Shown here: positions 10,299 through 59,491 of the stretch, piece by piece
Numbering within the stretch: the first letter of the stretch is position 1
Layout: each line of letters starts with the position of its first letter
Sequence record: MZ475893.1
Reading direction: 5' to 3' (one strand)
DNA: 64,000 nt
Notes under the pieces: generated by a model
Told to the model about the DNA's origin: nothing
The model's database searches: none
Seen by the model: the letters and a program-made list of their open reading frames with translations, nothing else
Translations under genes and position numbers: made by a program

Positions 10299-10352
10299 GC
10301 ACTAATAAGGTCAAAATGACCATTCTCTGCTATATGCTGCCTATGCTATAAT
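10299..10352 (+). promoter_or_regulatory. box promoter P1
   Basis: GCACTAATAAGGTCAAAAT-29 nt-TATAAT with TG extension. Confidence 0.75.
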
Positions 10353-10398
10353 AGTTGCGAGCGCATTGCTCAATACAATCATGCTGAGGAGCATAACA

Positions 10399-10740
10399 AT
10401 GAACGCATCTACTTTCGATTTCTCTATCATCTGCACCGAGAGCTTCAACATTAACGAGCTGAACAAAATCGCCGTTGAGCTGAACAAGCTGATCACCAAC
10501 TCGCAGATCAAAATTGAAGCCGTAGAGATTGATGATGAAGGCGCCGAGTGTATTCTTCTGGCTGTCGGTCTTGATGAAGACGGCGAAGAGACTGGCGAGA
10601 ACGGCTACTCCCTGCATCTGGACAACGGCGACTATCAGATCGTGTATCTCGGCGTGCCACATCCTGACTTCGATAAGCACGAACTTGCGACCAGCGACTT
10701 TGAGTTGTTCATCAAATCAGTGAACGGCCTTGAGTTCTAA
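10399..10740 (+). CDS. acidic hypothetical protein
   Basis: SD in hairpin ATGCT-GAGG-AGCAT; ATG 10399. Confidence 0.8.
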   Translation: MNASTFDFSIICTESFNINELNKIAVELNKLITNSQIKIEAVEIDDEGAECILLAVGLDEDGEETGENGYSLHLDNGDYQIVYLGVPHPDFDKHELATSDFELFIKSVNGLEF

Positions 10741-10793
10741 GCATTAATCTGGCAGAAATCGCCGTTGTGTTTAGACGCTCAACGGCATACTAT
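10741..10793 (+). promoter_or_regulatory. box promoter P2
   Basis: GCATTAATCTGGCAGAAAT-28 nt-TACTAT; TTGTGT 17 nt upstream of -10. Confidence 0.7.
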
Positions 10794-10842
10794 TATGTCT
10801 CTAGCGCAATGACGCGCTACAACAACGAAAGAGAGAAACAAC

Positions 10843-11097
10843 ATGAGCGAAGACGTTAAAGTAACAATCGACTTAGTAGCTGACTTTGTATCACGCACCG
10901 AAGTTGTGTTTGAAGACGGTCAATCATCTAATGACTGGCTCGCGCCGTATGATCTGCGCCTGAACGTAACTGAGCCTCAAGGGCCGAACGGCTACCCCGA
11001 AGTTGAAATCGTCGGCCAGCGCGATAACGTCTTGCGCTTCTTTGATGAGCAGATGCCTGACAGCGACATTACAGAAGACTCGCTTGAATCTGCATAA
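10843..11097 (+). CDS. hypothetical protein (84 aa)
   Basis: First ORF after P2. Confidence 0.8.
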   Translation: MSEDVKVTIDLVADFVSRTEVVFEDGQSSNDWLAPYDLRLNVTEPQGPNGYPEVEIVGQRDNVLRFFDEQMPDSDITEDSLESA

Positions 11098-11112
11098 GCA
11101 ACAAACAACACT

Positions 11113-11140
11113 GTGGCGTTACGGCGCCACTTTTCTATTT
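11113..11140 (+). terminator. intrinsic terminator
   Basis: GTGGCGT-TACG-GCGCCAC-TTTTCTATTT. Confidence 0.75.
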
Positions 11141-11156
11141 CTGATCTGAGGTCAAT

Positions 11157-11696: not shown

Positions 11697-11713
11697 TCAA
11701 CTAGCACAGGGAC

Positions 11714-12343: not shown

Positions 12344-12355
12344 ACAAACAACTCT

Positions 12356-12380
12356 AGCCTCGCATCGTGCGGGGCTTTCT
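12356..12380 (+). terminator. terminator-like hairpin
   Basis: AGCCTCGCA-TCG-TGCGGGGCT-TTCT. Confidence 0.6.
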
Positions 12381-12395
12381 GCTTTGGAGAATACC

Positions 12396-12656: not shown

Positions 12657-12657
12657 C

Positions 12658-13337: not shown

Positions 13338-13345
13338 TAATCTTT

Positions 13346-13377
13346 AGGGCTGCCATCTTGGTGGCCCTTTTTGTTTT
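13346..13377 (+). terminator. intrinsic terminator
   Basis: AGGGCTGCCA-TCT-TGGTGGCCCT-TTTTGTTTT. Confidence 0.8.
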
Positions 13378-13420
13378 CTGTAAACTACACGCACAATCCC
13401 AACAATGCGAGAACGCACAG

Positions 13421-14699: not shown

Positions 14700-14998
14700 T
14701 CTACGAATGGGTCCACGACCTTGAAGGTAACGAAAGTCAGAATCTGCCTATCTTGCCTCCAGACATTTATGCGTATGTGCGCGATGCCGTCACTGGCGCA
14801 CGTACTCCAATCAACTTTGAAGGCCGCACCGAGTTACAGCGTCAAGACAAGAAAGTCATAGGCGTTGTCTATTGGTCTAATCGAGCTAATCTGATTTCAT
14901 GGACGGGCGTCGAGCGCTTTCGTTTTACGCTGTATGTAGTACGCGCCTCACGTAAGTCAAATGAGCAACAGGAGGAAGCTCAAGTCTGCACTAATTAG
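14687..14998 (+). CDS. hypothetical protein
   Basis: Overlaps upstream stop. Confidence 0.65.
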   Translation: MGDIIYEWVHDLEGNESQNLPILPPDIYAYVRDAVTGARTPINFEGRTELQRQDKKVIGVVYWSNRANLISWTGVERFRFTLYVVRASRKSNEQQEEAQVCTN

Positions 14999-15040
14999 GC
15001 TGAAATAGCTATCGCGCATAATACGCTCCTGTGCTATACT
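14988..15040 (+). promoter_or_regulatory. box promoter P3
   Basis: GCACTAATTAGGCTGAAAT-28 nt-TATACT with TG extension. Confidence 0.7.
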
Positions 15041-15517: not shown

Positions 15518-15524
15518 TTGCTTG

Positions 15525-19356: not shown

Positions 19357-19894
19357 ATCTTTCGGTGTGTACCTGACGTTCATTCTGCGCCATCGCCCGC
19401 AAGACATTGGCATTGCAATGGACACCCAAGGCTGGGTATCAGTTCCAGACTTGCTCGAACGTGCTCAATACAAGAAGCAGCCAATCACGTTAGAGATGTT
19501 GCGTGAAGAAGTTGCTACTGATGGTAAAGGCCGCTTCCAGTTCAACGCTGCCCACTCGCGCATTCGTTGTGTGCAGGGACATTCAGTTGAGCATGTGATT
19601 CTTAACCTCAAGCCATACACGAATCACAATGACCCGCTGTATCACGGAACAGCCAGCAAGAACGTTGCGTCTATTCTTGCGCAGGGAATTCTTCGCGGTA
19701 AACGTAAACACGTTCACATCGCAACCAACACCGCTACTGCTAAGCAAGTTGGTCAGCGTCACGGTGAACCTGTTGTGTTTGAGATCGACACGTATGCCAT
19801 GATCGTTGCTGGCTATAAGTTCGAACAAGCCGAGAACGGTGTGATTCTTACCGAGCACGTTCCATCCCGATATCTAAGGTTGGTAGAGTTATGA
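19349..19894 (+). CDS. kptA: RNA 2'-phosphotransferase Tpt1/KptA
   Basis: LRHRP..MDTQGWV, IRCVQGHS, LYHGT, RKHVH, NGVILT motifs. Confidence 0.92.
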   Translation: MAKSFGVYLTFILRHRPQDIGIAMDTQGWVSVPDLLERAQYKKQPITLEMLREEVATDGKGRFQFNAAHSRIRCVQGHSVEHVILNLKPYTNHNDPLYHGTASKNVASILAQGILRGKRKHVHIATNTATAKQVGQRHGEPVVFEIDTYAMIVAGYKFEQAENGVILTEHVPSRYLRLVEL

Positions 19895-20298
19895 CTGAAC
19901 AACGAATGAGTTATTGCGGTTCACGTTACATCCGTACATCTTCTGGCAGGTGGTATTTGCTTTTCGAACGAGCTGCCTGCTTGTGCATCAATCGTCATGG
20001 TACCCAGTACTGGCGAGCAGGTACGCAAGTGTGGAAGGATGTGTCTCTCTCAACTCGCGCCACTTTGGAGAACGAGTTTATCAGTCGTACCCGCAAAGAT
20101 TTCAAGGAGTCGAAGTCTGCGTACAACAGATGGGGCAAGGTGATTCGTACACTCATTCTAGGTGCAGGCACTAACGAGCATCTCCACGATTTAGCGTCGA
20201 TTCTTGAGTCGCTGAGACAGACGCATATAGGGCGCAAGCAACAGCAACTGCGCACTACATTGGATGAAATAGCTATTCAGTCGAGAACTACCCTGTGA
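19891..20298 (+). CDS. hypothetical protein
   Basis: Coupled ATGA start. Confidence 0.7.
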   Translation: MTEQRMSYCGSRYIRTSSGRWYLLFERAACLCINRHGTQYWRAGTQVWKDVSLSTRATLENEFISRTRKDFKESKSAYNRWGKVIRTLILGAGTNEHLHDLASILESLRQTHIGRKQQQLRTTLDEIAIQSRTTL

Positions 20299-20304
20299 TA
20301 TAAT
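20252..20304 (+). promoter_or_regulatory. box promoter P4
   Basis: GCACTACATTGGATGAAAT-28 nt-TATAAT with TG extension. Confidence 0.75.
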
Positions 20305-22875: not shown

Positions 22876-23139
22876 ATGGCAGTAGGTTTCGCCAAAGATG
22901 ATGACGTGTCCAACACCGTCGAAACAAACGTGCTGAATGAAATCGACCGCGCTCGTTCTGAGTTGCGTGGCGCTGGTAGTTCGCACTGTATCAACCCTGA
23001 CTGTGGTGCAGAGATTCCACTCATGCGCCGCGTAGCAATGCCGAACGCTCGCTACTGCGTTAGCTGTCAAGCACACCATGACGGTACGCCTGCTGTTGGC
23101 TACAATCGTCGTGGTTCCAAAGATTCTCAACTGAGGTAG
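22876..23139 (+). CDS. ybiI: YbiI-like DksA/TraR C4 zinc-finger protein
   Basis: CINPDC..IPLMRR..P.ARYCVSCQ; C-terminus GYNRRGSKDSQLR matches YbiI as recalled. Confidence 0.88.
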   Translation: MAVGFAKDDDVSNTVETNVLNEIDRARSELRGAGSSHCINPDCGAEIPLMRRVAMPNARYCVSCQAHHDGTPAVGYNRRGSKDSQLR

Positions 23140-25752: not shown

Positions 25753-26733
25753 ATGCGTTTTGGTTTCGCCTGCAAACTGCTTGATGACAACGGTAAACAA
25801 CCGTACACGAACAAGAGCCTGAGCTATGCTCACTTCTCCAAGCTGTCTCAGACAGAGCAGCAAGAAAAGCTGGTGCTCGTCGTCACACACAATCTGACCT
25901 CGTTGCTTGAGATGATCAGACACGTTGGCCGTCTGCGCACCGACTTGCGCATGTTTCGAATCACAAGCGAATTACTTCCGCTATTCACGCACCCGATGGT
26001 AACGCGCATGTATCTCCAAACACACATGACCAAACTGACAGACACGATGTTGGCAACATGTGGTGCAGCGGCTAGACGTCTTGGTGTTCGACTGTCATTC
26101 CACCCTGGTCAGTTTACCGTGCTTGCGTCTGACCGACCCGACGTTATGCTCAACTCGATTAACGAAATGGAGTATCACGCCTACTGTGCGCAGGCTATGG
26201 GCTACGGTCGTAAGTTCCAAGATTTCAAAATCAACATTCATTTGAGTGGTCGTCGTGGTGCCACAGGTTTCAGAGACGCCTACTCTCGTCTAAGCGATCA
26301 TTGTCGCAAGATGATCACGGTAGAGAATGACGAGTACACTTCCTCGATCGAGGATTGTCTTGAGCTTGCCGACATTTGTCCTGTTGTTCTCGACATTCAC
26401 CATCACTGGGTAATGACTAACGAATACATTCAGCCGACCGATGATCGTGTTCAACGTGTCATTGACTCGTGGCGCGGCGTTCGTCCTGTTGCGCATTACT
26501 CTGTGTCACGCCCAGAGTTCATACCGTCTACGGGTCTGCCTGATCAGAACAAGCTAGAAGCAAAGTCTGCCTCGCTGCGTGCTCATTCTGACTACTACCA
26601 CAACGACAGCGTAAACGAGTGGGCCCTCAGCTTCGAGCAATTCGACCTGATGTGCGAGTCTAAAGCGAAGAATCTAGCACGCACGAAACTAGCCCTTTTT
26701 AAGGGCAACTCTGCACAAATATGGTCAAAATAA
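25753..26733 (+). CDS. uvsE: UV-damage endonuclease UvsE/UvdE
   Basis: RFGFAC, MFRITSELLP, RLSFHPGQFTVLAS, ENDE, LDIHHH, HYS motifs. Confidence 0.92.
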   Translation: MRFGFACKLLDDNGKQPYTNKSLSYAHFSKLSQTEQQEKLVLVVTHNLTSLLEMIRHVGRLRTDLRMFRITSELLPLFTHPMVTRMYLQTHMTKLTDTMLATCGAAARRLGVRLSFHPGQFTVLASDRPDVMLNSINEMEYHAYCAQAMGYGRKFQDFKINIHLSGRRGATGFRDAYSRLSDHCRKMITVENDEYTSSIEDCLELADICPVVLDIHHHWVMTNEYIQPTDDRVQRVIDSWRGVRPVAHYSVSRPEFIPSTGLPDQNKLEAKSASLRAHSDYYHNDSVNEWALSFEQFDLMCESKAKNLARTKLALFKGNSAQIWSK

Positions 26734-26766
26734 GGCTTGTTTTAGAAGGTGCCCCTATGATACACT
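26713..26766 (+). promoter_or_regulatory. box promoter P5
   Basis: GCACAAATATGGTCAAAAT-29 nt-TACACT with TG extension. Confidence 0.75.
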
Positions 26767-28928: not shown

Positions 28929-30149
28929 ATGGCTATCATTTCCGCAGAAGAACAAGCGCGTCTGGATTCACTTGCTGCTATCGTAGCTAAGATGTGGGCA
29001 CAAGGCGGCCCTGCTGTGCGTGATGCTCTGCGCTACGTTGCTAACCAAATGCTGAGCGACGAGCATTCATTCCCGTACGAAGAAGTGCCTGGTGTAACTC
29101 CTGACATTGAATCTGTCTACCACCATCTGAGCGATTTGCCACTGACGGGTATGACCCGCATCGTGCGCAATCCTGACTTGATCAGCTCGCTTGAAGATCT
29201 GATGAACAAAAATGAGCGTGAGATCTTCGGCTCTGCCGTGCGTAACAGCGCATACACTATGTTCAAACTTTTACCGCAGAATGAAACCTCGGTGTTCTGC
29301 CATCCAGGTAAAGGTGCTACCTCTCGCACCCAGCCTCGTCAAGTCGCTGAAAGACTGCATCGTGGTTTAAGCTACATGTTGTCCGTGCACGGTCTGGACG
29401 CGTATATCAAAAAGGCTGACAATCAAATTCGCTCTTACGGGCATACTCGCCTAGCCTCTCTGGTAATCGCAGTCGCAGTCAAAGGCGAACGCAGTGTTGC
29501 TACTCGCATCGTACCTCTGTGGTGTATGGACAATCACACCACAGAGGTGGGCACGATTGAACTTGATCAGGATATCCCGAACGATAAGCCTTCAACCTCA
29601 GTTGAGGTAGAAACTGATATCCAAGTTTGGCCGAAGTTTGAAGCAAAACAACTTAGAGATATCCTGCTCAAGCATGGGAATTATATCGAGTCTAAGCTGC
29701 GCGGCATGGACCGCGAAGAATTAGATGATACCTATGAAGCCTTCGTTGATGCATACCTTAACAATACTCACGACGAGGGTGATGAAGACGAAGATGATGA
29801 GTGGGACGAAGAAGAGGATGAAGACGAAGAAGATGCCTTCTGTACTGAAATCCCTTCGCGCCTAGCTCTACCTGTCGAACTGCCTATTGTTAATCTCGAA
29901 CGTCCGAAGTTAGACATTCGCCCAGGCATGCGTTTGAAGACCAAAAAGCCTAGACAGTCTCATATTCAGAATATTCTGATTGATCCAGTTTGGCACGCAG
30001 TTGACCCACAAGACGAGAACAATATTCATTATTTCAGTGTGTCTATTGTTGCCCGTGATACTGTCGGTCATAAGGCTATTTCAGCTTCGCCGCTTGAAGC
30101 ACTGACTATCTCCAACGTGCTGATGCAGATCGCTGAAACTAACACTTAA
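28929..30149 (+). CDS. hypothetical protein with acidic tract
   Basis: SD hairpin TTCTT-GAGG-AAGAA; 406 aa. Confidence 0.85.
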   Translation: MAIISAEEQARLDSLAAIVAKMWAQGGPAVRDALRYVANQMLSDEHSFPYEEVPGVTPDIESVYHHLSDLPLTGMTRIVRNPDLISSLEDLMNKNEREIFGSAVRNSAYTMFKLLPQNETSVFCHPGKGATSRTQPRQVAERLHRGLSYMLSVHGLDAYIKKADNQIRSYGHTRLASLVIAVAVKGERSVATRIVPLWCMDNHTTEVGTIELDQDIPNDKPSTSVEVETDIQVWPKFEAKQLRDILLKHGNYIESKLRGMDREELDDTYEAFVDAYLNNTHDEGDEDEDDEWDEEEDEDEEDAFCTEIPSRLALPVELPIVNLERPKLDIRPGMRLKTKKPRQSHIQNILIDPVWHAVDPQDENNIHYFSVSIVARDTVGHKAISASPLEALTISNVLMQIAETNT

Positions 30150-30194
30150 CTGGACAAAACAGCGCTTCTTAACGAGGCGCTTTTCTGCTATAAT
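30142..30194 (+). promoter_or_regulatory. box promoter P6 with terminator hairpin in spacer
   Basis: ACACTTAACTGGACAAAAC-28 nt-TATAAT; spacer AGCGCTTC-TTAAC-GAGGCGCT-TTT. Confidence 0.75.
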
Positions 30195-35617: not shown

Positions 35618-35662
35618 CTGGACGAAATAAGGCTACTCTGCTTAGGCTGCTTATGCTATAAT
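35610..35662 (+). promoter_or_regulatory. box promoter P7
   Basis: GCAAATAACTGGACGAAAT-28 nt-TATAAT with TG extension. Confidence 0.75.
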
Positions 35663-39357: not shown

Positions 39358-39654
39358 ATGTCTGAACAAACTCAATTGCCTGGCCAAGTCGTTATCGTTT
39401 GTGTTATGCAGGAATCTGATTCTTTCATGGGCCAAAAGTTTGATGGCTATGTGTACTTGCTCAATCCAGAACACAAAGAGATGTTTGAGCGTCACCTGCA
39501 GGCGCACAAAAGCCGTGAGAACTACTCACGCATTATCAGCCACGCTAATCACTATATAACTAGCACGGGCTTCGATGCGCTTCATGCTGCTATACGCAAA
39601 GACGCAAACAGACCCTGGCTGTGGTCAGATACTGATTACACGATAACTGCATAA
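39358..39654 (+). CDS. hypothetical protein
   Basis: GAGGTG RBS. Confidence 0.75.
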   Translation: MSEQTQLPGQVVIVCVMQESDSFMGQKFDGYVYLLNPEHKEMFERHLQAHKSRENYSRIISHANHYITSTGFDALHAAIRKDANRPWLWSDTDYTITA

Positions 39655-39701
39655 ATCTGGACAAAATAGAGGTAGCTAGAAAAAGCTGCCCCTGATATAC
39701 T
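39649..39701 (+). promoter_or_regulatory. box promoter P8
   Basis: GCATAAATCTGGACAAAAT-28 nt-TATACT with TG extension. Confidence 0.8.
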
Positions 39702-39729
39702 AAAAGCGTAGCTTGTGCTGCGCTTTTTT
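39702..39729 (+). terminator. intrinsic terminator overlapping P8 start site
   Basis: AAAAGCGTAGC-TTGT-GCTGCGCTTTTTT. Confidence 0.7.
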
Positions 39730-40406: not shown

Positions 40407-40853
40407 ATGACCTTCAATGAAGTCCCAACGAAAGCTCAACTCAGTCTTCTGGCTATGGCTGTTATGGCGTGCGCCGAGATTATGTGTCGCGGCCAAGAGA
40501 CTGCCGCACAAAAACAAGCTGTCGACCTGCTGTGTGCTCGATTCGGTTTGACTCTGGAAGATCTCACCCAGTTGACTAAGCTGCCTCCTGAAATCGATCA
40601 GTATGTGCAGAAAGTTATGGACGAAGGCGCTAAGCGACCTATATCTGACTTTGAGGCCAAAGCAGAGCCTGCGCCTGAATATAGTCAAGACGACCTCGAT
40701 TTGATTCGCGTAGAATATGAGCCAATCGATACGTCTGTCCTGCGTCAAGGGGCTGTGAATGATGGTGTTATCACAGTGCAGCAAGCAGCCACTTTCGAGC
40801 GTGATCAGATACTGACTGCTATTCTTGAGTACCGTCTGCGCTCAGAAGCATAA
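40407..40853 (+). CDS. hypothetical protein
   Basis: GAGGA RBS. Confidence 0.75.
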   Translation: MTFNEVPTKAQLSLLAMAVMACAEIMCRGQETAAQKQAVDLLCARFGLTLEDLTQLTKLPPEIDQYVQKVMDEGAKRPISDFEAKAEPAPEYSQDDLDLIRVEYEPIDTSVLRQGAVNDGVITVQQAATFERDQILTAILEYRLRSEA

Positions 40854-40900
40854 ATCTGGACAAAATCGTGGTTGTAGCAAAAACCGTCCTATGTTATAAT
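40848..40900 (+). promoter_or_regulatory. box promoter P9
   Basis: GCATAAATCTGGACAAAAT-28 nt-TATAAT, TG extension, TTGTAG at -35. Confidence 0.8.
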
Positions 40901-40906
40901 AGAGAT

Positions 40907-40991
40907 GTAGCGTAGACGTGAGGTATGCGCTATAAATTGAATGACGCGTTTTTGCTTGACTGTAAGGTAGCGGTATCTTACAGTCCTTTTT
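40907..40991 (+). ncRNA. candidate small RNA or attenuator leader (~85 nt)
   Basis: Between P9 and hairpin GACTGTAAG-10-CTTACAGTC-CTTTTT; start inferred from -10 position. Confidence 0.35.
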
Positions 40992-41109
40992 CAAGTGGCT
41001 TCGAAGTTTGAGGCTTCTTGCGAAAGGTCAAATGTACCTTTGAGCGTTTTCGGATTTACGCGGTTTTCACCGACTGCGCTCTCACTTTAAACCGCAAAGG
41101 AAATACATC

Positions 41110-41931
41110 ATGCCAGAAGCACGCAAACCTCGCCCAGCTGATCGTTTCGCTAAAGCCCGTGCAGAGAAAAACTCACCGGAGCGTCAAGATGCGGCGGCCC
41201 AGCGCACGTATAAAGACACTCCGCCTAAATCTGTTCAGGTGAAACTGGATGCTGTGGCAGCTTCTAAGAAGAAAGTTTCTCGCGGTCCCAAGGCATCTCG
41301 TCCGCGTCAGTCGCCTGCTGTTGACGCATCGCCAAAGCCTCGCATTCGTGATGAGGAACGTGTGTACAATCTCGTACACATGATTCTCTCTGCGTGGAAA
41401 GCCGATGCAGAAAACGCGGCAGCAAGTGTGGGAATCGTTAAAGTGTCTCGGCGTAAGATTGAGGGTGCGTTACGCGATCTCAAGAATACGCGCTTTACTA
41501 AAATCCCAGGCTTAATCAATGACGTGCTTGTCTACAATGAACTGGTAGCTGAGTTCGGGCAGTGGGTGTACGTCGAGCACGACAGTCCTGATTGGATTTT
41601 TGTGCGCCTGCCTGAAAACAGCACGCCTGTGATTCGCGCTGACATTAGCTATGCCAAGACGGGTGAAACTTCCACGTCTGTTTCGACTTCTAGTGAAGTT
41701 CTGCTGAAAGATCTTAGCGAAGACGAAGAAGATGAGATCCCCGAGAATGTCGAGTACGACGATGCGGACGAGACTGACGAAGACGAAGAGGAGCCGTATG
41801 ACTACAGCGCTTGGTCTCTGCGTGACCTGCAGGATTATGCAAAGCGCTATGACTTCCTGCAGCCCGACACTGAGGGGTTCGATGATCGCGAGAAGTTGAT
41901 AGCAGCCATCGAGCTGGGGGAACAGCACTAA
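41110..41931 (+). CDS. basic N-terminus, acidic tract, C-terminal HeH-like motif
   Basis: AAGGA RBS; YSAWSLRDLQDYAKRYDFL...DREKLIAAI. Confidence 0.85.
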   Translation: MPEARKPRPADRFAKARAEKNSPERQDAAAQRTYKDTPPKSVQVKLDAVAASKKKVSRGPKASRPRQSPAVDASPKPRIRDEERVYNLVHMILSAWKADAENAAASVGIVKVSRRKIEGALRDLKNTRFTKIPGLINDVLVYNELVAEFGQWVYVEHDSPDWIFVRLPENSTPVIRADISYAKTGETSTSVSTSSEVLLKDLSEDEEDEIPENVEYDDADETDEDEEEPYDYSAWSLRDLQDYAKRYDFLQPDTEGFDDREKLIAAIELGEQH

Positions 41932-41985
41932 GCACAAATATGGACAAAATAGTGGTAGCATCTAAAGCATGACCTGTGCTACACT
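41932..41985 (+). promoter_or_regulatory. box promoter P10
   Basis: GCACAAATATGGACAAAAT-29 nt-TACACT with TG extension. Confidence 0.75.
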
Positions 41986-41991
41986 ATAGAT

Positions 41992-42046
41992 CGAATGCCT
42001 TGTAGTTTTTTGACTGTGAGTTACTTTCCGGCTCACAGTCCTTTTT
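41992..42046 (+). ncRNA. candidate small RNA (~55 nt)
   Basis: Between P10 and hairpin GACTGTGAG-11-CTCACAGTC-CTTTTT; no ORF before P11. Confidence 0.35.
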
Positions 42047-42104
42047 AAAGTGCTCTCCCAAGAACGCTTTAAAAAGCACAGACTGCCTGCGCTTTTGATA
42101 GACA

Positions 42105-42157
42105 GCATAAATCTGGACAAAATCATGGTTGTATCAGAATGCTGCCTGTCATACACT
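42105..42157 (+). promoter_or_regulatory. box promoter P11
   Basis: GCATAAATCTGGACAAAAT-28 nt-TACACT. Confidence 0.75.
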
Positions 42158-42218
42158 TTAATGAGTCGAGCAATAGTGCTCGCAACAAACTAAATCCCAA
42201 TACTGAGGAGTATTACAC

Positions 42219-43829
42219 ATGGCACGTTTCGAAACTAACACTAATCTGGTTGGCAAAACTATCGTCCTGCTGAACGGCACCAAAGCGAAGATTGAAGACG
42301 CTATCGTTTCTGGCTACAAAGTGAAAGGCCAGACCAAGCGCATCGCAACCCGTGACGTCATCAAAGAGGGTGCGCACTTTAAAGAAATCGAGCGCACGCC
42401 GCTGAGCCAGCTGGAAGATACTGGCGAAGGTTATGTGAAGTTGAAAGAAGCCAAAGCCGCTTCTAAGAAAGCGCCTGCGAAAGACGCGAAAGCTACTGGC
42501 AAAAAAGCTGCGGCAAAAGACAAGCCTGCTAAGACCAGCAAAAAAGCTGCCGCTAAAGATAAGCCAGCGAAAGAGCAAGAGCCGAAAGTTCGTCGTAAGT
42601 CTGCGAAAGAGCAGGGCAACGATTATCAGGAACTCGCGCAGGCTATCATCAAAGGCGGTCGCCGTGCAGCGCCAGTTGAAATTGACAGCGTGGACGAAGC
42701 GCTGACCGATGCAATCGCTAAGCGTCTGACCGCTGTTGTCGAATCGTCTGAGATTGCGAAACTCGCCGCTGATAACAAAACGCCGATCGCTAACGCACTG
42801 ACCGTAACTTACGGTGCTGAGTTTGCGACTGATGCAAACGTTGTGCAGATTACGCTGAACCTGCAATACGCTAAGCCGACTGCCGTTGAGTCTGCCGCTC
42901 CTACTCTGGAGAATGCCGAAGCAATCGCAATGCGTGCTGCTAAAATGGCCGCACCTAAAGTGAGCGCTAAACTCAAGAAGGCGGTGCGTGAAGCGTTCGA
43001 CATTGAAACAGACCTTGAGCTGGGTACTGTGATTATGTCAGGCGATGATCAATTCGCTTACTACGGCGAAAGCGCGAAGCACGCTGGCAAAGCGCTGCTG
43101 TACGTTGTCGAAACTGACAAGTTCAAATCTGTCCTGGCCTCTACTCTGACCGACTACGAACTGCCTGCTGATGAAGAAGCTGAGGCAGAAGAAGCTGAGG
43201 CAGAAGAAGAAGAGGAAGAAGAAGAAGAGGAAGAAGAAGAAGAAGCCGCTGATGACTTCGACGACGAAGAGGAAGAAGATGCGGACGATGCAGATGATGC
43301 CGACGATGCTGATGGCGACGACGACGAATTCCAGTACGTTGCTGTAGGCGATGAACACTTTGCTCTGGTCAACAAAAAGATCACAGCCAAGTATCACGAT
43401 GCACTGGCTGAGCAATTCGGCGTTAGCACCGAAGCGCTGGTCCCAGGCTTAGTGTTGACCAACGGCGAGATCACTTTCGCTTATCTGGGCAACGATAGCA
43501 AAGGCGGCCTGCTCGTTATCGACCTCGACGACGATGCGGACGAAGACGACAACGTTCTGGTCTACCCGAAAGCAGACGTCAAATCACTGACCGACTTCTC
43601 TCCTGTGCTGGGTGATGCAGATGAAGAAGACGCAGACGATGCAGAAGAGACCGACGAAGAAGACGAAGATCAGGACGACGACTTCGAATTTGACGATGCG
43701 CCAACTGCTGACCTCGAAGACCTGTCTGACGATGAACTGCGTGACCGCGCTGTTGAGATGGGCCTGACCACTGTACGCAAAGCTGACAAAATGAACGCCA
43801 AGCAACTGCGTGCGCTGCTGTCTGAATAA
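42219..43829 (+). CDS. Lys/Ala linker plus highly acidic protein with C-terminal HeH-like motif
   Basis: SD hairpin AATACT-GAGG-AGTATT; poly-Glu/Asp tracts; biased codon usage. Confidence 0.9.
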   Translation: MARFETNTNLVGKTIVLLNGTKAKIEDAIVSGYKVKGQTKRIATRDVIKEGAHFKEIERTPLSQLEDTGEGYVKLKEAKAASKKAPAKDAKATGKKAAAKDKPAKTSKKAAAKDKPAKEQEPKVRRKSAKEQGNDYQELAQAIIKGGRRAAPVEIDSVDEALTDAIAKRLTAVVESSEIAKLAADNKTPIANALTVTYGAEFATDANVVQITLNLQYAKPTAVESAAPTLENAEAIAMRAAKMAAPKVSAKLKKAVREAFDIETDLELGTVIMSGDDQFAYYGESAKHAGKALLYVVETDKFKSVLASTLTDYELPADEEAEAEEAEAEEEEEEEEEEEEEEAADDFDDEEEEDADDADDADDADGDDDEFQYVAVGDEHFALVNKKITAKYHDALAEQFGVSTEALVPGLVLTNGEITFAYLGNDSKGGLLVIDLDDDADEDDNVLVYPKADVKSLTDFSPVLGDADEEDADDAEETDEEDEDQDDDFEFDDAPTADLEDLSDDELRDRAVEMGLTTVRKADKMNAKQLRALLSE

Positions 43830-47308: not shown

Positions 47309-50300
47309 ATGTCCGAGAACAATCAAAGCGGAGCTACTCGCTTCGGCACAGAAGTGCAGGCCGGCATCGCAGAAGCGCAACGCCGTGCTAACTCTGCTGA
47401 GAGTGGCAAGCTGAACAAATGCACGATCATCGTGCTGACTTCGATTGACGCCAACCAGCGTTACTCTTATCTGTCCGCAGACGAACAACTGCGCGAAGAA
47501 CTGGTGCGCGGTAAAGTAATCAACCGTCTGCCTGACCTGTTAGAGCGTGCTGGTGGTAATACCGCTGCTGACAATAACAGCGCGTTCCACATCCTGCACC
47601 CAAACAACGGCGTGCCTACCTCGATCGATGCTCGCATCAAAGTGGGCGAAGGCAATGCGGTCATTCTGTCGTATACTGTAAACAAAGCAGTGACAGAGAT
47701 GCACGGTAGCTTATCGCTTGCTCTGTTTGCATCTGGCGCCGAAGACTTAAATGATCTCGCCGCTGATTTCGGTATTCACGCAATTGCGATTGTTGAAGAA
47801 TCGAAAGCCGCTGAGTTCATCAAAGGACTTGAAGCTCAGGTGGAAGCGTTGAATATTGTAAATCTCACTAGCATTGATGATTCTAACGATTCGTTAGACC
47901 TGCCAGTGATTGACTTCGCTGCATTAGCGGGCAATCCTACAACAGTGCTTACGGGTGCTGTGCGTACCTTCATCATGCAATCAATCAGCGGCGAAGTCTT
48001 CGCTGCAATCCCTAATAACGGAGAACTGAACGTGAAAAACGATAACGTGGCTCAGCCTGCTGACCTGGAAGAAGACTTCGACAACAATGATGAGATTGTT
48101 GATCAGAACGGCGGCGAAGGCGAAGTTACTGGCGAAGAGCTGCTGGGCTACAAAGCAGAAAATCTTTCGCTCGACCAAATGCGTAGTGCGCTTGAAGCGA
48201 TCAACTACGACCTGTCTGAAATGACGGAAGAAGCCATCCGTGAAGCGTTCGAAACTGAACAGAACCTTTACCTGGGTGGCGGCGATGATGAATCTTCCGA
48301 AGAAGAGGAAGATGAAGACGCCGCTGATGTTGACAGCGACGAAGAAGAAGAGGAAGAAGACGAGGAGTTCGATGCTCCTGCGTATCTGGCTCAAGCGCTC
48401 GCTGCTGAAAACTTCAGCCGTAGCGATCTGAAACTGCTGGTCAAGTCGCAAGACCTGAAAGTTATGAAGAACGACACTCCTGAAACTCTGGTGCAGAAGC
48501 TGCTGGACCTGGTGCAGGACGCATCGTCTGATGAAGTGTTCGAACTGATCACTGTGTTCGTTGAACTGCTGGACGAGCACGGCGTTGAGTGTGACGCGCT
48601 GCGTGCTACCATCGCTGAGGATGAAAGCGATGAAGACGAAGAAGAGGACGGCGAAGACGAAGACGAAGACGCCGATGAAGATGGCGACGACGAAGAAGAG
48701 GAAGATGAAGAGGAGTCTGATGAAGACGAATCTGAAACCGAATCTGACGACGAACCCGCAACGCTGTTTTCTGCCTCTGACGTTACTGATCCTCTCGACT
48801 ACTTCCAGTTCGAAGGTGGTGACCTGACTCACGAACAACGCGCCGCTGCCGTACAGGCGATGGGTTCAAGCACTGTTGGTCTGAACATCGTTCAGGTCAT
48901 GAAAGCGTTCAATCAAATCCGTTCACAGTCTAACGCGATTGACATTGCCGCTGATGAAGCCGACTCTGCGCTGTACGACATGCTGACTGCGCTGCCGTAT
49001 GCAACGCTGCTGAGCTTCGCTCAAGAGATTGAGCTGGACGTTGATGGCGAAGAGTCTGCCGAAGATCTCGTCACTCTGCTGATGGACGAATCTACTGCCG
49101 ACAGCGATACGCTGAAAGCGCTGGCGTATGTGTTCGAAACCTACGGCGGCCTGGGTGTTGAAGCAGATGATATCCTGCTGATGGACTGGCATGAAGCGCT
49201 GGCGCTGGTTATTCCTGTGTATGCATCGTCAGACGAAGTTGAGTCTGATGCAGAAGAAGACGAAGACGAAGACGTTATCGCCGATGAAGATTCGTCTAAC
49301 GCTAACCTGAAGTTCCTGAAATCTGTTGACGTCAACAATCCTGTCGGCCCGATGCTTGAAGTTGATATGGACCGCACTCTGGTTATCAACTACACCTTCA
49401 CTGACGGTAACACTTACCGCGATGTGCAAGATGAGCTGGCTGATATCGGTGGCGTTAACTACCGCTTCCCGTTCAATCTGGGCAAAGCTGGTAAAGCAAA
49501 CAAGAGCAGTGCGCCTGGTAGCCTGATTGCTCCTGCTGAACATCTGATCGCAATGTTAGACCGCGCCGGTACTACCCGCTTCTTAGCTGACCCGAACACC
49601 TTCGATGTTGGTGTGTGGGCAGAATCTCTGGAGCGTATGCTGAACGCAGAAATCTCTAACAACCTGTACGCTGGTCGCATTGAAGATGGCGCTGACCCGC
49701 AGCAAGCTGGCATCGTAGTCGGTGACTTCATCGATGAAGACGAGCAAGCAGAAGTTGCTGACCTCGGCCTGCTGGATGAAGATGAGCTGGAAGCGTACAC
49801 TGGTGATCATCTGCCGATTGCAAGCCTGTACAATGCGCAAGCCCGCGTACGTCCAGTCAACGTCGATAGCTCTTACGTTGCACTGAGCACCGTAGTGCTG
49901 AACGTTGCAGTCCCTGGCTTCTGGTGTGACTCTGATGTTGGCCGTCTGGTGCAAGCGTGTGTTAATCGCGTAATCAGCCTGGCGGAAAGCGTTGAAGGCA
50001 TCAAAGTGTATGCAGGCTTCACTCTGGAATCTGCTGCGCTGCTGAACAACGGTCGCCTGTACGAAGTTGTTGGTGCGCTGCGTGAGATGGACGGTGTGCA
50101 GTCTTACTCTGCCGCAGACGCTGCTAACTTCTCAGAAGCGGAAGACATTATCGAAGTAGCGTCTTCTATCGATGATCGTGACCTGCCGTTCACTGTACTG
50201 GCAAGCGGCCTGTCTGGCGCAACGTTTGAAAACGGCGGTGACCTGACCGTGCTGGTTCCGTGCTCTGTCTTCGACGAAGAAGAAGATGAGTCCGAAGAGG

Positions 50301-50326
50301 ACGAGTCAGAAGAAGACGAAGAGTAA
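47309..50326 (+). CDS. 1005-aa extremely acidic protein with about three HeH-like repeats
   Basis: SD hairpin TTATCT-GAGG-AGATAA; several Asp/Glu tracts; strong codon bias. Confidence 0.9.
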   Translation: MSENNQSGATRFGTEVQAGIAEAQRRANSAESGKLNKCTIIVLTSIDANQRYSYLSADEQLREELVRGKVINRLPDLLERAGGNTAADNNSAFHILHPNNGVPTSIDARIKVGEGNAVILSYTVNKAVTEMHGSLSLALFASGAEDLNDLAADFGIHAIAIVEESKAAEFIKGLEAQVEALNIVNLTSIDDSNDSLDLPVIDFAALAGNPTTVLTGAVRTFIMQSISGEVFAAIPNNGELNVKNDNVAQPADLEEDFDNNDEIVDQNGGEGEVTGEELLGYKAENLSLDQMRSALEAINYDLSEMTEEAIREAFETEQNLYLGGGDDESSEEEEDEDAADVDSDEEEEEEDEEFDAPAYLAQALAAENFSRSDLKLLVKSQDLKVMKNDTPETLVQKLLDLVQDASSDEVFELITVFVELLDEHGVECDALRATIAEDESDEDEEEDGEDEDEDADEDGDDEEEEDEEESDEDESETESDDEPATLFSASDVTDPLDYFQFEGGDLTHEQRAAAVQAMGSSTVGLNIVQVMKAFNQIRSQSNAIDIAADEADSALYDMLTALPYATLLSFAQEIELDVDGEESAEDLVTLLMDESTADSDTLKALAYVFETYGGLGVEADDILLMDWHEALALVIPVYASSDEVESDAEEDEDEDVIADEDSSNANLKFLKSVDVNNPVGPMLEVDMDRTLVINYTFTDGNTYRDVQDELADIGGVNYRFPFNLGKAGKANKSSAPGSLIAPAEHLIAMLDRAGTTRFLADPNTFDVGVWAESLERMLNAEISNNLYAGRIEDGADPQQAGIVVGDFIDEDEQAEVADLGLLDEDELEAYTGDHLPIASLYNAQARVRPVNVDSSYVALSTVVLNVAVPGFWCDSDVGRLVQACVNRVISLAESVEGIKVYAGFTLESAALLNNGRLYEVVGALREMDGVQSYSAADAANFSEAEDIIEVASSIDDRDLPFTVLASGLSGATFENGGDLTVLVPCSVFDEEEDESEEDESEEDEE

Positions 50327-51994: not shown

Positions 51995-52786
51995 ATGGCT
52001 AAATCTGCTAAAGTAACCGTAACCGTCGCACAGAAAGTTCTGGCTCAGATGCTGGGTGTTGTTGTAGCGAACGCAAGCGAGAAAGAACTCGTTGCGATTC
52101 TGTCTGACCTGGGCCTGACTGTTGCTGCGAAAGGTAAAGGTGCTAAAGCTGAGAAAGCTGCGAAAGGCGGCAAGAAAGCTAAAGCCGCTACCGTTGCTCA
52201 GATCGTTAAGGCCGTTGAAGAAGAGGAAGCTATCTCCCTCGACGGCGTAAGTGAAGATGACCTGCGTGCTGCGGTCATCAAAGCTAAGCTGGCTAAGGCC
52301 AACAAAGCTAAAGCGCTGGACGAAGAGGAGTTGACTGAACTCCTGACCGACGCAATGGGTGCCGAGTCTGATGAAGACGAGGAAGAGGAAGAGGACGAAG
52401 AAGAAGAAGAGGACGAAGACGACTCGGACGACGAAGACGAAGATGAAGACGACGAGGACTCAGATGATGAAGATGAGGACGAAGACGACGAAGATTCGGA
52501 CGACGAAGACGAGGACGAAGATGATGAGGACGAAGACGAAGACGAGGATGAAGATGAGGACGAAGATGAAGATCTCGACCTCGACGGCCTCGACGAAGAC
52601 GAACTCCGCGCCCTCGTGATCGACAACAAGCTGGCCACTAAGGCCAAAGCTAAAAAGATGGACGAAGACGAACTTCGTGAACTGTGTGAATCCCACTTCG
52701 GCGGCGACGATGAAGACGAAGACGAAGATGAGGACGAAGACGATGAAGACTTCGACGACGAAGACGAAGACGAAGACGACGAATAA
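51995..52786 (+). CDS. Lys/Ala N-terminus, two HeH-like repeats and very long Asp/Glu tracts
   Basis: AGGA RBS; LDGVSEDDLR.. and LDGLDEDELR.. repeats. Confidence 0.9.
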   Translation: MAKSAKVTVTVAQKVLAQMLGVVVANASEKELVAILSDLGLTVAAKGKGAKAEKAAKGGKKAKAATVAQIVKAVEEEEAISLDGVSEDDLRAAVIKAKLAKANKAKALDEEELTELLTDAMGAESDEDEEEEEDEEEEEDEDDSDDEDEDEDDEDSDDEDEDEDDEDSDDEDEDEDDEDEDEDEDEDEDEDEDLDLDGLDEDELRALVIDNKLATKAKAKKMDEDELRELCESHFGGDDEDEDEDEDEDDEDFDDEDEDEDDE

Positions 52787-52999: not shown

Positions 53000-53512
53000 A
53001 TGACTAAGAAAATCATTTCTGGCCTGAACAAAAACCTGAAAGCTATCGCTAAATCAGAAGCTGCCCTGGCCAAAACTGTTGTTGCTACCAACAAAGAGAT
53101 CGAAAACCTGGGTTCACAGCGTGCTGGTATCGAAGCGCAGATCGCTGAACTGTCTGGTGTTGCTGCTCCTGCCAAAGCTGATAAAAAAGCTAAAGGCGCC
53201 AAAGCTGAAAAAGCGGCCAAGCCTGCTAAAGCTGAAAAAGCAGCTAAAGCAGGTAAGAAAGAAAAAGCTGCTAAAGCTGAAAAGCCTGCCAAAGCTGATA
53301 AAAAAGCGAAAGGCGCCAAAGCTGAAAAAGCTGCTAAGCCTGCTAAAGCAGACAAAGCTGGCAAGAAAGAAAAAGCTGCTACCAAGCCTGCTAAAGCTGA
53401 TAAAAAAGCGAAAGGCGCCAAGGCCGACAAAGCTGCTAAAGGCGGTAAAGCTGACAAAGCCGGTAAGAAAAAGAAAGCGCAGTCTGATGACTTCGAATTC
53501 GAAATGGAATAA
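53000..53512 (+). CDS. histone H1/AlgP-like Lys-Ala-Pro repeat protein with N-terminal coiled coil
   Basis: GGAG RBS; three imperfect copies of PAKADKKAKGAKA(E/D)KAAK; ends SDDFEFEME. Confidence 0.88.
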   Translation: MTKKIISGLNKNLKAIAKSEAALAKTVVATNKEIENLGSQRAGIEAQIAELSGVAAPAKADKKAKGAKAEKAAKPAKAEKAAKAGKKEKAAKAEKPAKADKKAKGAKAEKAAKPAKADKAGKKEKAATKPAKADKKAKGAKADKAAKGGKADKAGKKKKAQSDDFEFEME

Positions 53513-54861: not shown

Positions 54862-54915
54862 ACACTAAGCTGGACAGATCGTGGGTAGCGTCTGACGCTC
54901 TGCCTATGTTATAAT
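54862..54915 (+). promoter_or_regulatory. box promoter P12 (topoisomerase operon)
   Basis: ACACTAAGCTGGACAGATC-29 nt-TATAAT with TG extension. Confidence 0.75.
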
Positions 54916-54986
54916 ACATATAGGACAAGTAGTGTCTGAATATGCTAATATCGAGTGGTCAACGCTACTCATTAGGAGAAACGAAA

Positions 54987-57014: not shown

Positions 57015-57268
57015 TGGTTAAAAGTGAAAACCTATCCATCGGAACGCAAGTTCGTTTTCTCGATATGCCTGTCTTTCAGCACCCGCCAATGACCGAAGAG
57101 CAACGCAAGCAGTATGAAGCGTTAATGGCAAAAGGTCGTGAGTTGTCGAAAAACGTTACCGTATCTGCATTCAGTGTAGTTGACGGTAAGCCTGCTGAGC
57201 GTGTGCAGGTGCAGATGAGTCGCACAACTCTCGATAAGATTAATGCGATGCACTCAGGAGATCAGTAA
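57014..57268 (+). CDS. small hypothetical protein
   Basis: GGAGG RBS, TAATG coupling. Confidence 0.7.
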   Translation: MVKSENLSIGTQVRFLDMPVFQHPPMTEEQRKQYEALMAKGRELSKNVTVSAFSVVDGKPAERVQVQMSRTTLDKINAMHSGDQ

Positions 57269-57507
57269 TGCTCAAGGGTAAGAAAGTAAATAAAGCACCG
57301 TCGCGTGCTTCACGAATCTTTCCTGTGGTCGCAGGTACAGAACACTGGCCAATCCCGCTGTTCGATATGCCTGACTTTCATATCAACATGAGCGAGGAGC
57401 AGAAAGCTCGTCTTGATTCTGCTATGGCTAACGTCACGCAACACATTAAAGATAGTCCTTACAACGGGAAGCGATTCTTTACTGTTCCTGGAGATGCGCA
57501 TGAATAA
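57268..57507 (+). CDS. small hypothetical protein, paralogue of previous
   Basis: AGGAG RBS; shared DMP.F...M.EEQ motif. Confidence 0.7.
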   Translation: MLKGKKVNKAPSRASRIFPVVAGTEHWPIPLFDMPDFHINMSEEQKARLDSAMANVTQHIKDSPYNGKRFFTVPGDAHE

Positions 57508-57739
57508 GTTCCAGCGTCACATTAAATCTCTGCCTGAATCTGGTGCCAGCTTTCAGCAAGCAGCACCGCTCGGCCGTACTGTCATAACACATTCAGCGGG
57601 TATAACACGCGGTGTAACTCGCATGGCTTATCCTCAGTTGCAGCAAATCCCGCGCAACTTATCGGGCCTGAATGATGTGAACGTTCGTCGCATCGATATT
57701 AACTTGGGTGAAAACGTTTTCATCCAGACGCATTCGTAA
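57500..57739 (+). CDS. small hypothetical protein
   Basis: GGAG RBS before ATG 57500. Confidence 0.65.
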   Translation: MNKFQRHIKSLPESGASFQQAAPLGRTVITHSAGITRGVTRMAYPQLQQIPRNLSGLNDVNVRRIDINLGENVFIQTHS

Positions 57740-57748
57740 GAGGCTGGC

Positions 57749-59410
57749 ATGCCAATCAAACCTAAGAAAGTCAAAGCGGCCAAAGCAGTTAAGCCTGCTA
57801 AAGCGACCGCTGTAGCGAAGCCGCTTAAAGTCAAAGTGAAATCGAAAGCCGTTTCTGTCGATGACATTAAGACAAAGAAAAAGTCGAAAGAAGTTGCCAC
57901 AATGCAGACAGGCGCATCGCTCTATCCGATGATTGGTCAAGATGAATCGAACATTCGAGATCAGGGCCTCGCAGATTACACGCGCCACGCGCTGGGTGTA
58001 TACGGTTCTTACGTTGTTGAGGACCGTGCTATAGCTGACTATCGTGATGGCCTCAAGCCTGTGCACCGTGCGCTGCTGTGGTCGTTGTCTGATCTTAACT
58101 TGCGTCCTGGTGGTGCGTTCAAGAAGTCTGCGCGTACTGTTGGTGACACGATTGGTAAGTATCACCCGCACGGCGATGCTGCCTGTTACGGTGCGATGGT
58201 AACGATTGCAAACACAGTGCCACCAGCTGTTGCTGGTTCTGGTAACTGGGGTAGCCCTGTTGACCCTGCTGCTGCGATGCGTTATACCGAAGCGAAGATG
58301 AGTAAGTTCACGGGCACGTTCTTGCTCGACTCTGATTACTTAGAAGTTGTGCCGCGTGTGCCTAACTTCTCAAACGATCTTGAGCTGCCACTTTATCTGC
58401 CTGCACTGTTGCCGTACATGTTGTTCAATGGCTCTGTGCCTGCACCAGCGTACGGCGTCAAGTGTGGTAACCCGTCATTCAGCTTCACGTCCGTATCTAA
58501 AGTCGTGTGTGAGATGCTGAGCGGCAAAGAGTACACAGCGAAGACGCTTGCGAAGACGCTTGAGATTCGCCATGAGTTCGGCTGTATCGACGTTAGCTCT
58601 GACGAAGATATGTACCAGCTTATCTCAACAGGCCGCGGTAAAGTCACATACGAACCGCTGATTAAGATCGATGAGAAGTCGAAGACCATCACGATTCAAA
58701 CGTATGTGCCTGCTGGTATGTCCAACACTGCGGGTATCACGAAGAAGCTGGAGAAGATTTCTGAGTGGCCTGGCATTAGCTCCGCAGCAAACGCCAGCGG
58801 TAAGAAGAACAAGAACGCAGGTCCTTACGGTGCAGCGTTTGAGTTCCGCGTACGTGGCAGCGAAGACCAGTTGTACGAACTCGCCTCACGCATTCAGAAG
58901 GAGGTGACTGCGGGCGTCAACTACAATCTGGGCGTTACGATTCGTCGTGCTGATAAGCCGAACACCTTCAAGTATCTGAACTATCTGGATTACTTCAAGG
59001 CGTGGGTAGCGTATCGTATCAAACTCGAAACAGCCATGCTGAACAACAAGCTGGCTAAAGCAGAGAAAGCCCTGCACTTGCAGCAAGTATATCTGTGGGC
59101 GGTTGACAACATGAAGCAACTGCTGGCTGCTTTGCCTAAAGTGTTAGTCGCAGAAGACCCAGACAAAGCGCTGGCCAAAGCGTGCAAGATTCCAGTTGAA
59201 GATGCGAAGATCATCCTCGACCGTCAAGTGCGTAAGCTCGCCAAGCTGGAACGTGGTGGTCTGATTGCCAAAATCAAAGACATTAAGGAAGAGATTGCTG
59301 GTTATAAGGCAGGCTTGAAAGCGCCAGGCAAACATGCAGCACAGAGCACGGCTGCTAAAGTCAAAGCGTACATCAAATCACCTGATGACAAGCTGCCCGT
59401 AAGTCTTTGA
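57749..59410 (+). CDS. gyrA: type IIA topoisomerase subunit A (GyrA/ParC-like, no C-terminal pinwheel)
   Basis: DGLKPVHR, GKYHPHGD, AAMRYTE catalytic Tyr. Confidence 0.95.
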   Translation: MPIKPKKVKAAKAVKPAKATAVAKPLKVKVKSKAVSVDDIKTKKKSKEVATMQTGASLYPMIGQDESNIRDQGLADYTRHALGVYGSYVVEDRAIADYRDGLKPVHRALLWSLSDLNLRPGGAFKKSARTVGDTIGKYHPHGDAACYGAMVTIANTVPPAVAGSGNWGSPVDPAAAMRYTEAKMSKFTGTFLLDSDYLEVVPRVPNFSNDLELPLYLPALLPYMLFNGSVPAPAYGVKCGNPSFSFTSVSKVVCEMLSGKEYTAKTLAKTLEIRHEFGCIDVSSDEDMYQLISTGRGKVTYEPLIKIDEKSKTITIQTYVPAGMSNTAGITKKLEKISEWPGISSAANASGKKNKNAGPYGAAFEFRVRGSEDQLYELASRIQKEVTAGVNYNLGVTIRRADKPNTFKYLNYLDYFKAWVAYRIKLETAMLNNKLAKAEKALHLQQVYLWAVDNMKQLLAALPKVLVAEDPDKALAKACKIPVEDAKIILDRQVRKLAKLERGGLIAKIKDIKEEIAGYKAGLKAPGKHAAQSTAAKVKAYIKSPDDKLPVSL

Positions 59411-59439
59411 AAATCTGTAAATAGACTATGATAAACTCT

Positions 59440-59491
59440 GCACTAAGTTGGACAGAAGCCGCTTGAGATTATTCTTAGTCTATGATATACT
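59440..59491 (+). promoter_or_regulatory. box promoter P13
   Basis: GCACTAAGTTGGACAGAAG-27 nt-TATACT, TG extension, TTGAGA at -35. Confidence 0.75.

Follow-up and report, generated by a model that had tools for sequence, protein, structure and literature searches.

The window considered here is a 64,000-nucleotide stretch of sequence record MZ475893.1, identical in sequence to positions 199,892-263,891 (the final 64 kb) of Erwinia phage pEa_SNUABM_45. This jumbo phage has a genome of 263,891 bp, and its host is Erwinia amylovora. Within the window lie 13 promoter-like sites at which a conserved 19-bp upstream box precedes a -10 hexamer. Nearly all genes of this phage are annotated as hypothetical, with thymidylate synthase being one exception; genes occupy the + strand from about 185 kb through the end of the record and on to 46 kb, and the - strand from 46 to 185 kb. 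Judged by the annotated relative Alexandra, the window contains the end of the SSB gene, a UvsX-like recombinase, the topoisomerase II genes, and a long run of small unknown genes that also includes an RNA 2'-phosphotransferase, a radical-SAM protein, a DksA/TraR zinc-finger protein, an endonuclease and a transglycosylase. The box promoters precede a 49-kb block that consists mainly of small genes without known function.

How well defined is the box? All 13 copies are present where a sequence-only reading of this DNA had placed them, all on the + (coding) strand, and every site is upstream of a gene on that strand. The 19-bp consensus put forward in that reading has five exact matches where none is expected; when up to three mismatches are allowed, 11 sites are found versus 1.0 expected, a count reached by 0 of 100 shuffles. 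The boxes at 14988 and 54862 are more degenerate than the rest, and those at 39649, 40848 and 42105 are indeed identical to one another. With a position weight matrix built from the 13 window sites and scanned on both strands, these sites score 18.4-29.3, the next best window position on either strand scores 12.3, and the best score across the other 200 kb of the genome is 10.8. A looser composite pattern (box, 27-29 nt, TAnnnT) recovers 12 of the 13 + strand sites in the window and misses 54862, which is too degenerate for it; its sole other match in the whole genome is spurious and on the - strand. The motif thus has sites only in the window when the whole genome is scanned, and a scan of relatives finds the same class in four other phages.

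The geometry of the sites is rigid. The distance from box to -10 is 28 nt at eight sites, 29 at four and 27 at one, as originally described, with the -10 at 10741 read as TACTAT at 28 nt (an alternative, TATTAT, lies at a spacing of 31). The hexamer conforms to TAnnnT at 13 of 13 window sites, and it carries a TG extension at 11, the extension being missing at 10741 and 42105. It had also been noted that the box is kept where it runs into the preceding gene, and this holds at seven sites that overlap the 3' end of an annotated gene, with two more abutting a stop codon. One statement of the sequence-only reading did not survive: the -35 position, said not to be consistently conserved, has a T six bases past the box (the first base of a -35 hexamer) at all 13 window sites, and about half of the sites have TTG there. 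Because the box is rigidly tied to this invariant T, box spacings of 27, 28 and 29 nt imply sigma70 spacers of 16, 17 and 18 bp. The conserved module is accordingly longer than first given, about 30 bp from approximately -65 to -35, and includes a conserved AAnTCT flank 5' of the box; the region directly 5' of the TG is rich in C/T. If transcription starts 7 nt past the -10, the box itself occupies -59 to -41, close to the placement near -60 to -42 that had been proposed.

Table 1. Box promoters and associated predicted features (positions are those of the window)
Feature	Coordinates	Strand	Details
Box promoter 1	10299-10352	+	Box 10299-10317; T at box+6 (10323); TGc; -10 TATAAT 10347-10352; next gene 10399
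Box promoter 2	10741-10793	+	Box 10741-10759; -10 TACTAT 10788-10793 (or TATTAT 10791-10796); no TG; next gene 10843
Box promoter 2, spacer			7-bp inverted repeat
Box promoter 3	14988-15040	+	Box 14988-15006, overlapping preceding stop codon; TGc; -10 TATACT 15035-15040; next gene 15086
Box promoter 4	20252-20304	+	Box and spacer within last 46 nt of gene 19891-20298; TGa; -10 TATAAT 20299-20304; radical-SAM gene downstream
Box promoter 5	26713-26766	+	Box 26713-26731; TGa; -10 TACACT 26761-26766; next gene 26818
Box promoter 6	30142-30194	+	Box 30142-30160; TGc; -10 TATAAT 30189-30194; next gene 30261
Box promoter 6, spacer	30161-30181		Terminator-like hairpin
Box promoter 7	35610-35662	+	Box 35610-35628; TGc; -10 TATAAT 35657-35662; next gene 35705
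Box promoter 8	39649-39701	+	Perfect box; TGa; -10 TATACT 39696-39701; 5' hairpin 39702-39727; next gene 39755
Box promoter 9	40848-40900	+	Perfect box; partial -35 TTGTAG; TGt; -10 TATAAT 40895-40900
Box promoter 9, output			Predicted short terminated transcript, then 200-nt leader before gene 41110
Box promoter 10	41932-41985	+	TGc; -10 TACACT 41980-41985; predicted transcript of about 55 nt ending at terminator
Box promoter 11	42105-42157	+	Perfect box; partial -35 TTGTAT; -10 TACACT 42152-42157; no TG; next gene 42219
Box promoter 12	54862-54915	+	Most degenerate box; TGt; -10 TATAAT 54910-54915; topoisomerase II large-subunit gene downstream
Box promoter 13	59440-59491	+	TGa; -10 TATACT 59486-59491; spacing 27; late-type motif 5' (59414), 267-nt leader 3'
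Predicted short transcript, promoter 9	40907-40992	+	5' hairpin and intrinsic terminator (40958-40985, then T run)
Predicted short transcript, promoter 10	41992-42046	+	Terminator 42012-42040; paralogue of promoter 9 transcript
Second-class example TCTGTAAATA	about 59414-59423	+	Annotated 'putative middle/late promoter' in Lu11

Other host-type promoter sequences are scarce in this genome. Among 34 sites that match TGNTAYAMT, 11 are box promoters and most of the others have no box and apparently lie inside coding sequence; canonical -35/-10 matches number only a handful genome-wide, with one in the window (59630-59658). A hairpin or terminator in the spacer is found at a few box promoters only and so is not a general feature. 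The match at 59630-59658 (TTGACC, 17 bp, TATAAT) has no box but comes close to a consensus sigma70 promoter, and it is situated within the 267-nt leader before gene 59765; since it adds to promoter 13 and the late-type motif, that gene is preceded by three tandem promoter-like elements.

The box architecture is retained across genera. Alexandra, with about 75% nucleotide identity to the window in a patchy pattern, has it at 12 largely syntenic places; Erwinia phage Y3 (Sasquatchvirus) has 11 sites, Yersinia phage fHe-Yen9-02 has 8, and Dickeya phage JA29 (Salmondvirus) has 8 with weaker -10s. The resulting set of 52 sites comes from five genomes of five phage genera infecting Erwinia, Dickeya and Yersinia, in which the loose composite pattern has 56 matches on the coding strand versus 2 on the opposite strand. 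The spacing is 28 nt at 40 of the 52 sites (an implied 17-bp spacer in 40/52), 29 at 7 and 27 at 5. Information content reaches 2.0 bits at C2, A3, G11 and A17 of the box; A18 and the -35 T each have 1.8 bits, A16 has 1.6, and G1, A5 and G12 lie between 1.0 and 1.4 (1.2 for G12), with A5-A7 at 0.7-1.4; the TG has about 1.0 bit per base, and the T, A and T of the -10 have 2.0 bits each. Box positions 12-14 are biased by genus, being GAC in the window phage, GCT in Y3 and fHe-Yen9-02, and TCC in JA29. Between orthologous pairs in the window and Alexandra, the box is 74% identical, versus 30% for the 30 nt upstream and 49% for the spacer, such that the box is conserved against randomised flanks. 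Orthologous promoters even retain their quirks across genera, for example the unusual last box bases at the topoisomerase promoter; therefore, the elements evolved in place under selection and did not spread recently.

In two Pseudomonas phages, no member of the class was seen in the regions sampled, 26 kb of Lu11 and 50 kb of PaBG. In an exact search of IMG/VR, the only contigs with a -10 behind the box are 260-268 kb long and belong to this phage family; about 60 other single matches are all without a -10. Among 185,579 species genomes, the exact composite pattern at one spacing has 40 matches, none of them in Enterobacterales, and the only genome with multiple matches is a metagenome-assembled genome labelled Raoultibacter sp. 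(CGS1Y3-bin67), in which five contigs have box promoters; these contigs are almost certainly mis-binned jumbo-phage DNA of this family. A description of the box was not found in the literature on the motif, on the promoters of Y3, PaBG and Lu11, or on fHe-Yen9-02 (the Y3 paper itself being outside the search), and the box promoters are apparently a promoter class without earlier description.

Predicted leaders are 36-65 nt long at 10 of the 13 promoters and about 200-270 nt at three, and 9 of the 13 have a hairpin within the first few nucleotides (mean z-score -1.6, p = 0.03 versus random windows). Short 5' stem-loops are seen approximately 4-40 nt past most -10s, e.g. at 39702-39727, 42164-42181 and 54926-54938. 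At promoter 42105, the hairpin stem shows paired compensatory changes in relatives (GACGC/GCGTC, GGTGC/GCACC, CGAGCA/TGCTCG) with the loop kept. Given hairpins a few nucleotides past the predicted start that carry such compensatory changes, transcripts probably start at the predicted positions. Two predicted short transcripts, at 40907-40992 and 41992-42046, end in near-identical intrinsic terminators with a conserved CTTTTTAAAG tail, and the terminator stem of the promoter 9 transcript covaries in Alexandra and Y3; these two transcripts are potential small RNAs or attenuators. Neither Rfam (at the gathering threshold for the whole window and in E-value mode for 40800-42250) nor ARAGORN identified a known RNA or tRNA. 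Additionally, the leader of about 100 nt at 41000-41110, before gene 41110, is conserved in Alexandra and JA29 and has a stem (GCGGTTT / AAACCGC) beside the ribosome-binding site, with a possible role in the control of translation.

Several neighbouring features deserve a brief description. Inside the box-promoter region, window 22876-23139 encodes an 87-aa protein with a DksA/TraR-type C4 zinc finger (Pfam E = 2e-10) that is kept in Y3, JA29 and fHe-Yen9-02 and that likely binds the RNA polymerase secondary channel. Just 5' of the first box promoter, a 612-aa protein (8375-10213) matches an EPS-depolymerase/tail-fibre family in PHROGs, and its gene sits among otherwise non-structural genes. 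Extremely acidic proteins (up to 46% aspartate plus glutamate) are encoded at 42219-43829, 47309-50326, 51995-52786 and 53000-53512; they adjoin a lysine/alanine-rich basic protein with histone-H1-like AKA repeats, and the acidic and AKA-repeat proteins together give rise to large families of low-complexity DNA repeats. The 400 nt at 5895-6296 have no annotated gene and contain an extended -10 without a box (TGGTATAAT near 6020), and this stretch may be an unannotated small gene or RNA.

A second promoter-like class is present in the same genome. The 7-mer CTGTAAA occurs in 58 copies, 56 of which are on the coding strand. It is mostly part of a longer aaTCTGTAAATA that precedes a start codon by 30-50 nt; copies are found in both gene blocks and often lie directly 3' of a terminator. 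Intergenic copies of this class (core CTGTAAATA) are found in the window near 3135, 13378, 23846, 28048, 51226, 51940 and 59414, and a TCTGTAAATA motif stands at the edge of 1.3 kb without an annotated gene (record 86607-87925) inside the structural-gene block. In the Lu11 record, the CTGTAAATA motif bears the annotation 'putative middle/late promoter', and PaBG has the motif as well. The box fails the Lu11-type core CTGTAAA(T/C)A in that an invariant C replaces the T after CTG; where the leader is short, the box is about 90-110 nt upstream of the start codon, versus 30-50 nt for the Lu11-type core. The phage family also has a sigma factor of its own. In pEa_SNUABM_45, this sigma70-family gene lies just upstream of the window (record 197,704-198,741); its product belongs to phrog_17569, whose homologues carry PF04542, and its profile matches region 2 of primary sigma factors only (PDB). 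HHpred support has been reported for a presumably related sigma factor of PaBG (gene 118; PMC7412058). No RNA polymerase is found among the nine largest proteins. Because CTGTAAATA occurs in Lu11 and PaBG and the box class was not found in the regions sampled, the box class is the best candidate for host-sigma promoters, and in the simplest programme, host sigma70 polymerase would start at the box promoters and the phage sigma would then take over at CTGTAAATA.

We describe the class as lineage-specific host-type phage promoters with a long, rigid and highly conserved upstream module. For what reads them, we favour, with confidence that is evenly balanced, an explanation in which the 13 sites would be host sigma70 promoters whose module combines subsites for the C-terminal domains of the RNA polymerase alpha subunit (alpha-CTDs) with the site of a sequence-specific reader that is probably encoded by the phage. 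The core elements, i.e. the TG-extended -10, a residual -35 with its invariant first T, and a spacer of 16-18 bp, would be read by host RNA polymerase. This keeps much of the earlier interpretation, in which a sigma70-type extended -10 ahead of genes was recognised and the MotA class was set aside; it is the account of the -35 that has had to change. Two A-tracts lie one helical turn apart in the module, at about -55 to -52 and -45 to -42, and would bind two alpha-CTDs, as at UP elements. The box span equals that of a UP element and its A-runs fall on the alpha-CTD subsites beside the -35 T, which supports alpha-CTD contact. The invariant C-58, A-57 and G-49 are unexplained by a reader of A/T tracts, implying an additional, sequence-specific reader; such a reader probably exists and is most likely phage-encoded. 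It would be a phage protein, delivered with the DNA or made early, that contacts RNA polymerase and sets the strength or timing of the whole class, whether by activating it or by shutting it off. On this explanation, the 49-kb block behind the box promoters most likely comprises early genes.

Several observations weigh against this explanation. The sigma gene is itself preceded by a TCTGTAAATA/CTGTAAATA motif and has no box promoter; therefore, the early-to-late logic is incomplete and the first step of the cascade is left unexplained. If the entire class depended on a phage activator, that activator would have to enter with the DNA. The genus bias at box positions 12-14 could be taken to suggest that box and reader co-evolve, but the argument is soft because these positions vary even within a genome. 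Candidates for the reader are also lacking where we have looked: about 50 window proteins scanned with Pfam have no significant match to a DNA-binding domain, and Pfam and PHROGs searches with the 10 genes directly downstream of boxes and 20 small basic window proteins yielded no DNA-binding candidate, the matches being radical SAM, the DksA/TraR zinc finger, SLT and DUF6939. At BLAST-level sensitivity, tblastn against the whole genome finds no relatives of T4 MotA, AsiA, Alt, gp33, DsbA or Alc (best E-value 0.11), and the 'putative transcriptional regulator' of Lu11 has no relative in the pEa_SNUABM_45 genome.

Could host polymerase be sufficient? If the box were a pure UP element, it would be read by host alpha-CTDs with no other factor, and several features fit: the -59 to -41 span matches the E. 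coli UP element, A16-A18 (1.6-2.0 bits) fall on the proximal subsite (around -42) and A5-A7 (0.7-1.4 bits) on the distal one (around -52), every host-type promoter of the phage has a box, as a factor-free early class would, and the class is limited to phages of Enterobacterales hosts. The UP consensus, which is said to go back to Estrem et al. 1998, is however defined by A/T tracts, and only roughly 10 of its 15 specified positions match. Where it has T or is unspecified, the box has the invariant G11 and C2 plus G1 and G12; at -49/-48, where T is expected, the box keeps GG or GT; and C2, A3 and G11 are invariant at 2.0 bits over 52 sites and five genera, with G12 at 1.2 bits. For these reasons, we consider a factor-free UP element unlikely. 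The phage's own sigma is another potential reader: the match of its region 2 to primary sigma factors only and the PF04542 domain of its homologues suggest an RpoD-like protein, for which a sigma70-like -10 would be suitable, and the box promoters would in that case form a middle class, in which the box serves that holoenzyme as its upstream element. Yet the sigma gene and CTGTAAATA are conserved in Lu11 and PaBG (PMC7412058), where the box class was not found in the regions sampled, and assigning the box promoters to the phage sigma would leave the genome with almost no host-readable promoters. We find this improbable.

A further idea turns on the likeness between the two classes. In Alexandra, JA29 and fHe-Yen9-02, the 5' half of the box together with its flank has the sequence AAnTCTGCAAATA, which differs from the late-type core TCTGTAAATA by a single base, and the comparison of TCTGCAAATA in these three phages with TCTGTAAATA raises the prospect that this half is a disabled late-promoter core at which the phage sigma holoenzyme or a late factor docks, occluding the early promoter. 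When the box is scored with a matrix derived from 44 late-type sites, the peak falls in a single fixed register, with a mean of -9.9 over the 52 sites versus a background of -36.5 (standard deviation 11; 99th percentile -9.5), and it does so despite the invariant C in the box where the late motif has an invariant T; a polymerase docked at this position would overlie both the -35 and the -10 of the early promoter. This is a post hoc comparison, though, and the shared part is A/T-rich, which is why we treat a disabled core as a long shot. Moreover, the window phage and Y3 need a gap of 1-2 nt, a disabled core explains neither the -35 T nor the 3' half of the box, and the reading of CTGTAAATA by the phage sigma is an assumption. 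The corollary, that the box would be a built-in timing switch in which late docking without initiation would block every early promoter together at the onset of late transcription, strikes us as speculative to the same degree. A host transcription factor shared by Erwinia, Dickeya and Yersinia would account for a class seen only in phages of Enterobacterales and for a box core that is the same across hosts, but the composite pattern (exact match, one spacing) is missing from all Enterobacterales in the species-representative collection. On inspection, the consensus sequences of CRP, Fis and IHF, a sigma54 (-24/-12) reading of the opposite strand and the marbox were each rejected on invariant positions or, as for the marbox, on spacing. 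A host factor is, to us, very doubtful. Finally, the frequent overlap of boxes with gene ends and the hairpins in some spacers might suggest a non-promoter function, such as a signal for RNA processing or termination where upstream genes end, or a site on the DNA that is used in replication or partition. To this we assign next to no weight: an asymmetric box in fixed register with the -35 T and the -10 precedes a gene start in every case, and two boxes are far from any gene end (86 and 174 nt).

There are several reasons to pursue these promoters. They bear on the gene-expression programme of a widespread group of non-nucleus-forming jumbo phages, which includes Alexandra, Y3, AD1/JA29 and fHe-Yen9-02, and several of its members are under trial against fire blight and soft rot. 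The box class marks a likely early regulon of 13 transcription units across 49 kb, and together with the CTGTAAATA class and the phage sigma it provides a testable two-stage model. The box is also a precise DNA bait for a new polymerase-directed regulator, and these compact, strong-looking promoters could serve as portable parts.

How do the box promoters compare with known systems? Like the box, the E. coli UP element (rrnB P1 type) occupies about -59 to -38 of a sigma70 promoter, adjoins the -35 and has two A-rich subsites one helical turn apart; unlike it, the box has an invariant C, A and G, keeps GG or GT where the UP consensus has T, is far more tightly conserved, and is confined to one phage lineage. 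The CTGTAAATA motif of Lu11 is essentially one base apart from the 5' half and flank of the box (AAnTCTGCAAATA), but the T that never varies in that motif is in every case a C in the box, which adds a conserved 3' half, the -35 T and a sigma70-type -10. Phage factors that bind at a set distance 5' of a weak -35 and contact RNA polymerase are known from P2 Ogr and P4 Delta (about -55) and from Mu C and Mor (about -43); their sites have dyad symmetry and serve late or middle genes, whereas the box is asymmetric and belongs to a probable early class. The marbox of MarA, SoxS and Rob is an asymmetric site whose ends are GCAC and YAAA; it is about 20 bp long and is located near -50 to -60 at class I promoters. 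The likeness is a lead only: the halves of the box are about 2 bp further apart, and no AraC-type protein was found in the window. T4 middle promoters, which use a MotA box and AsiA, also combine a good sigma70 -10 with a phage-specific box that replaces a full -35. The MotA box (TGCTTtA type), however, is centred near -30, whereas the box described here is centred near -50, has another sequence and keeps the -35 T, and no MotA or AsiA relative is found by tblastn; the distinction drawn in the sequence-only reading is thus borne out. T4 early promoters, which serve to outcompete host promoters, share with the box class an unusually long, phage-specific sigma70 consensus, a TG-extended -10 and conserved upstream A-rich positions. 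They differ in keeping a strong -35 (GTTTAC) and in having upstream positions that are A/T only, and T4 injects Alt to modify alpha, whereas tblastn against the whole genome finds no Alt relative in pEa_SNUABM_45. Taken together, the box class is nearest in kind to T4 early promoters and UP elements, and not to the MotA class.

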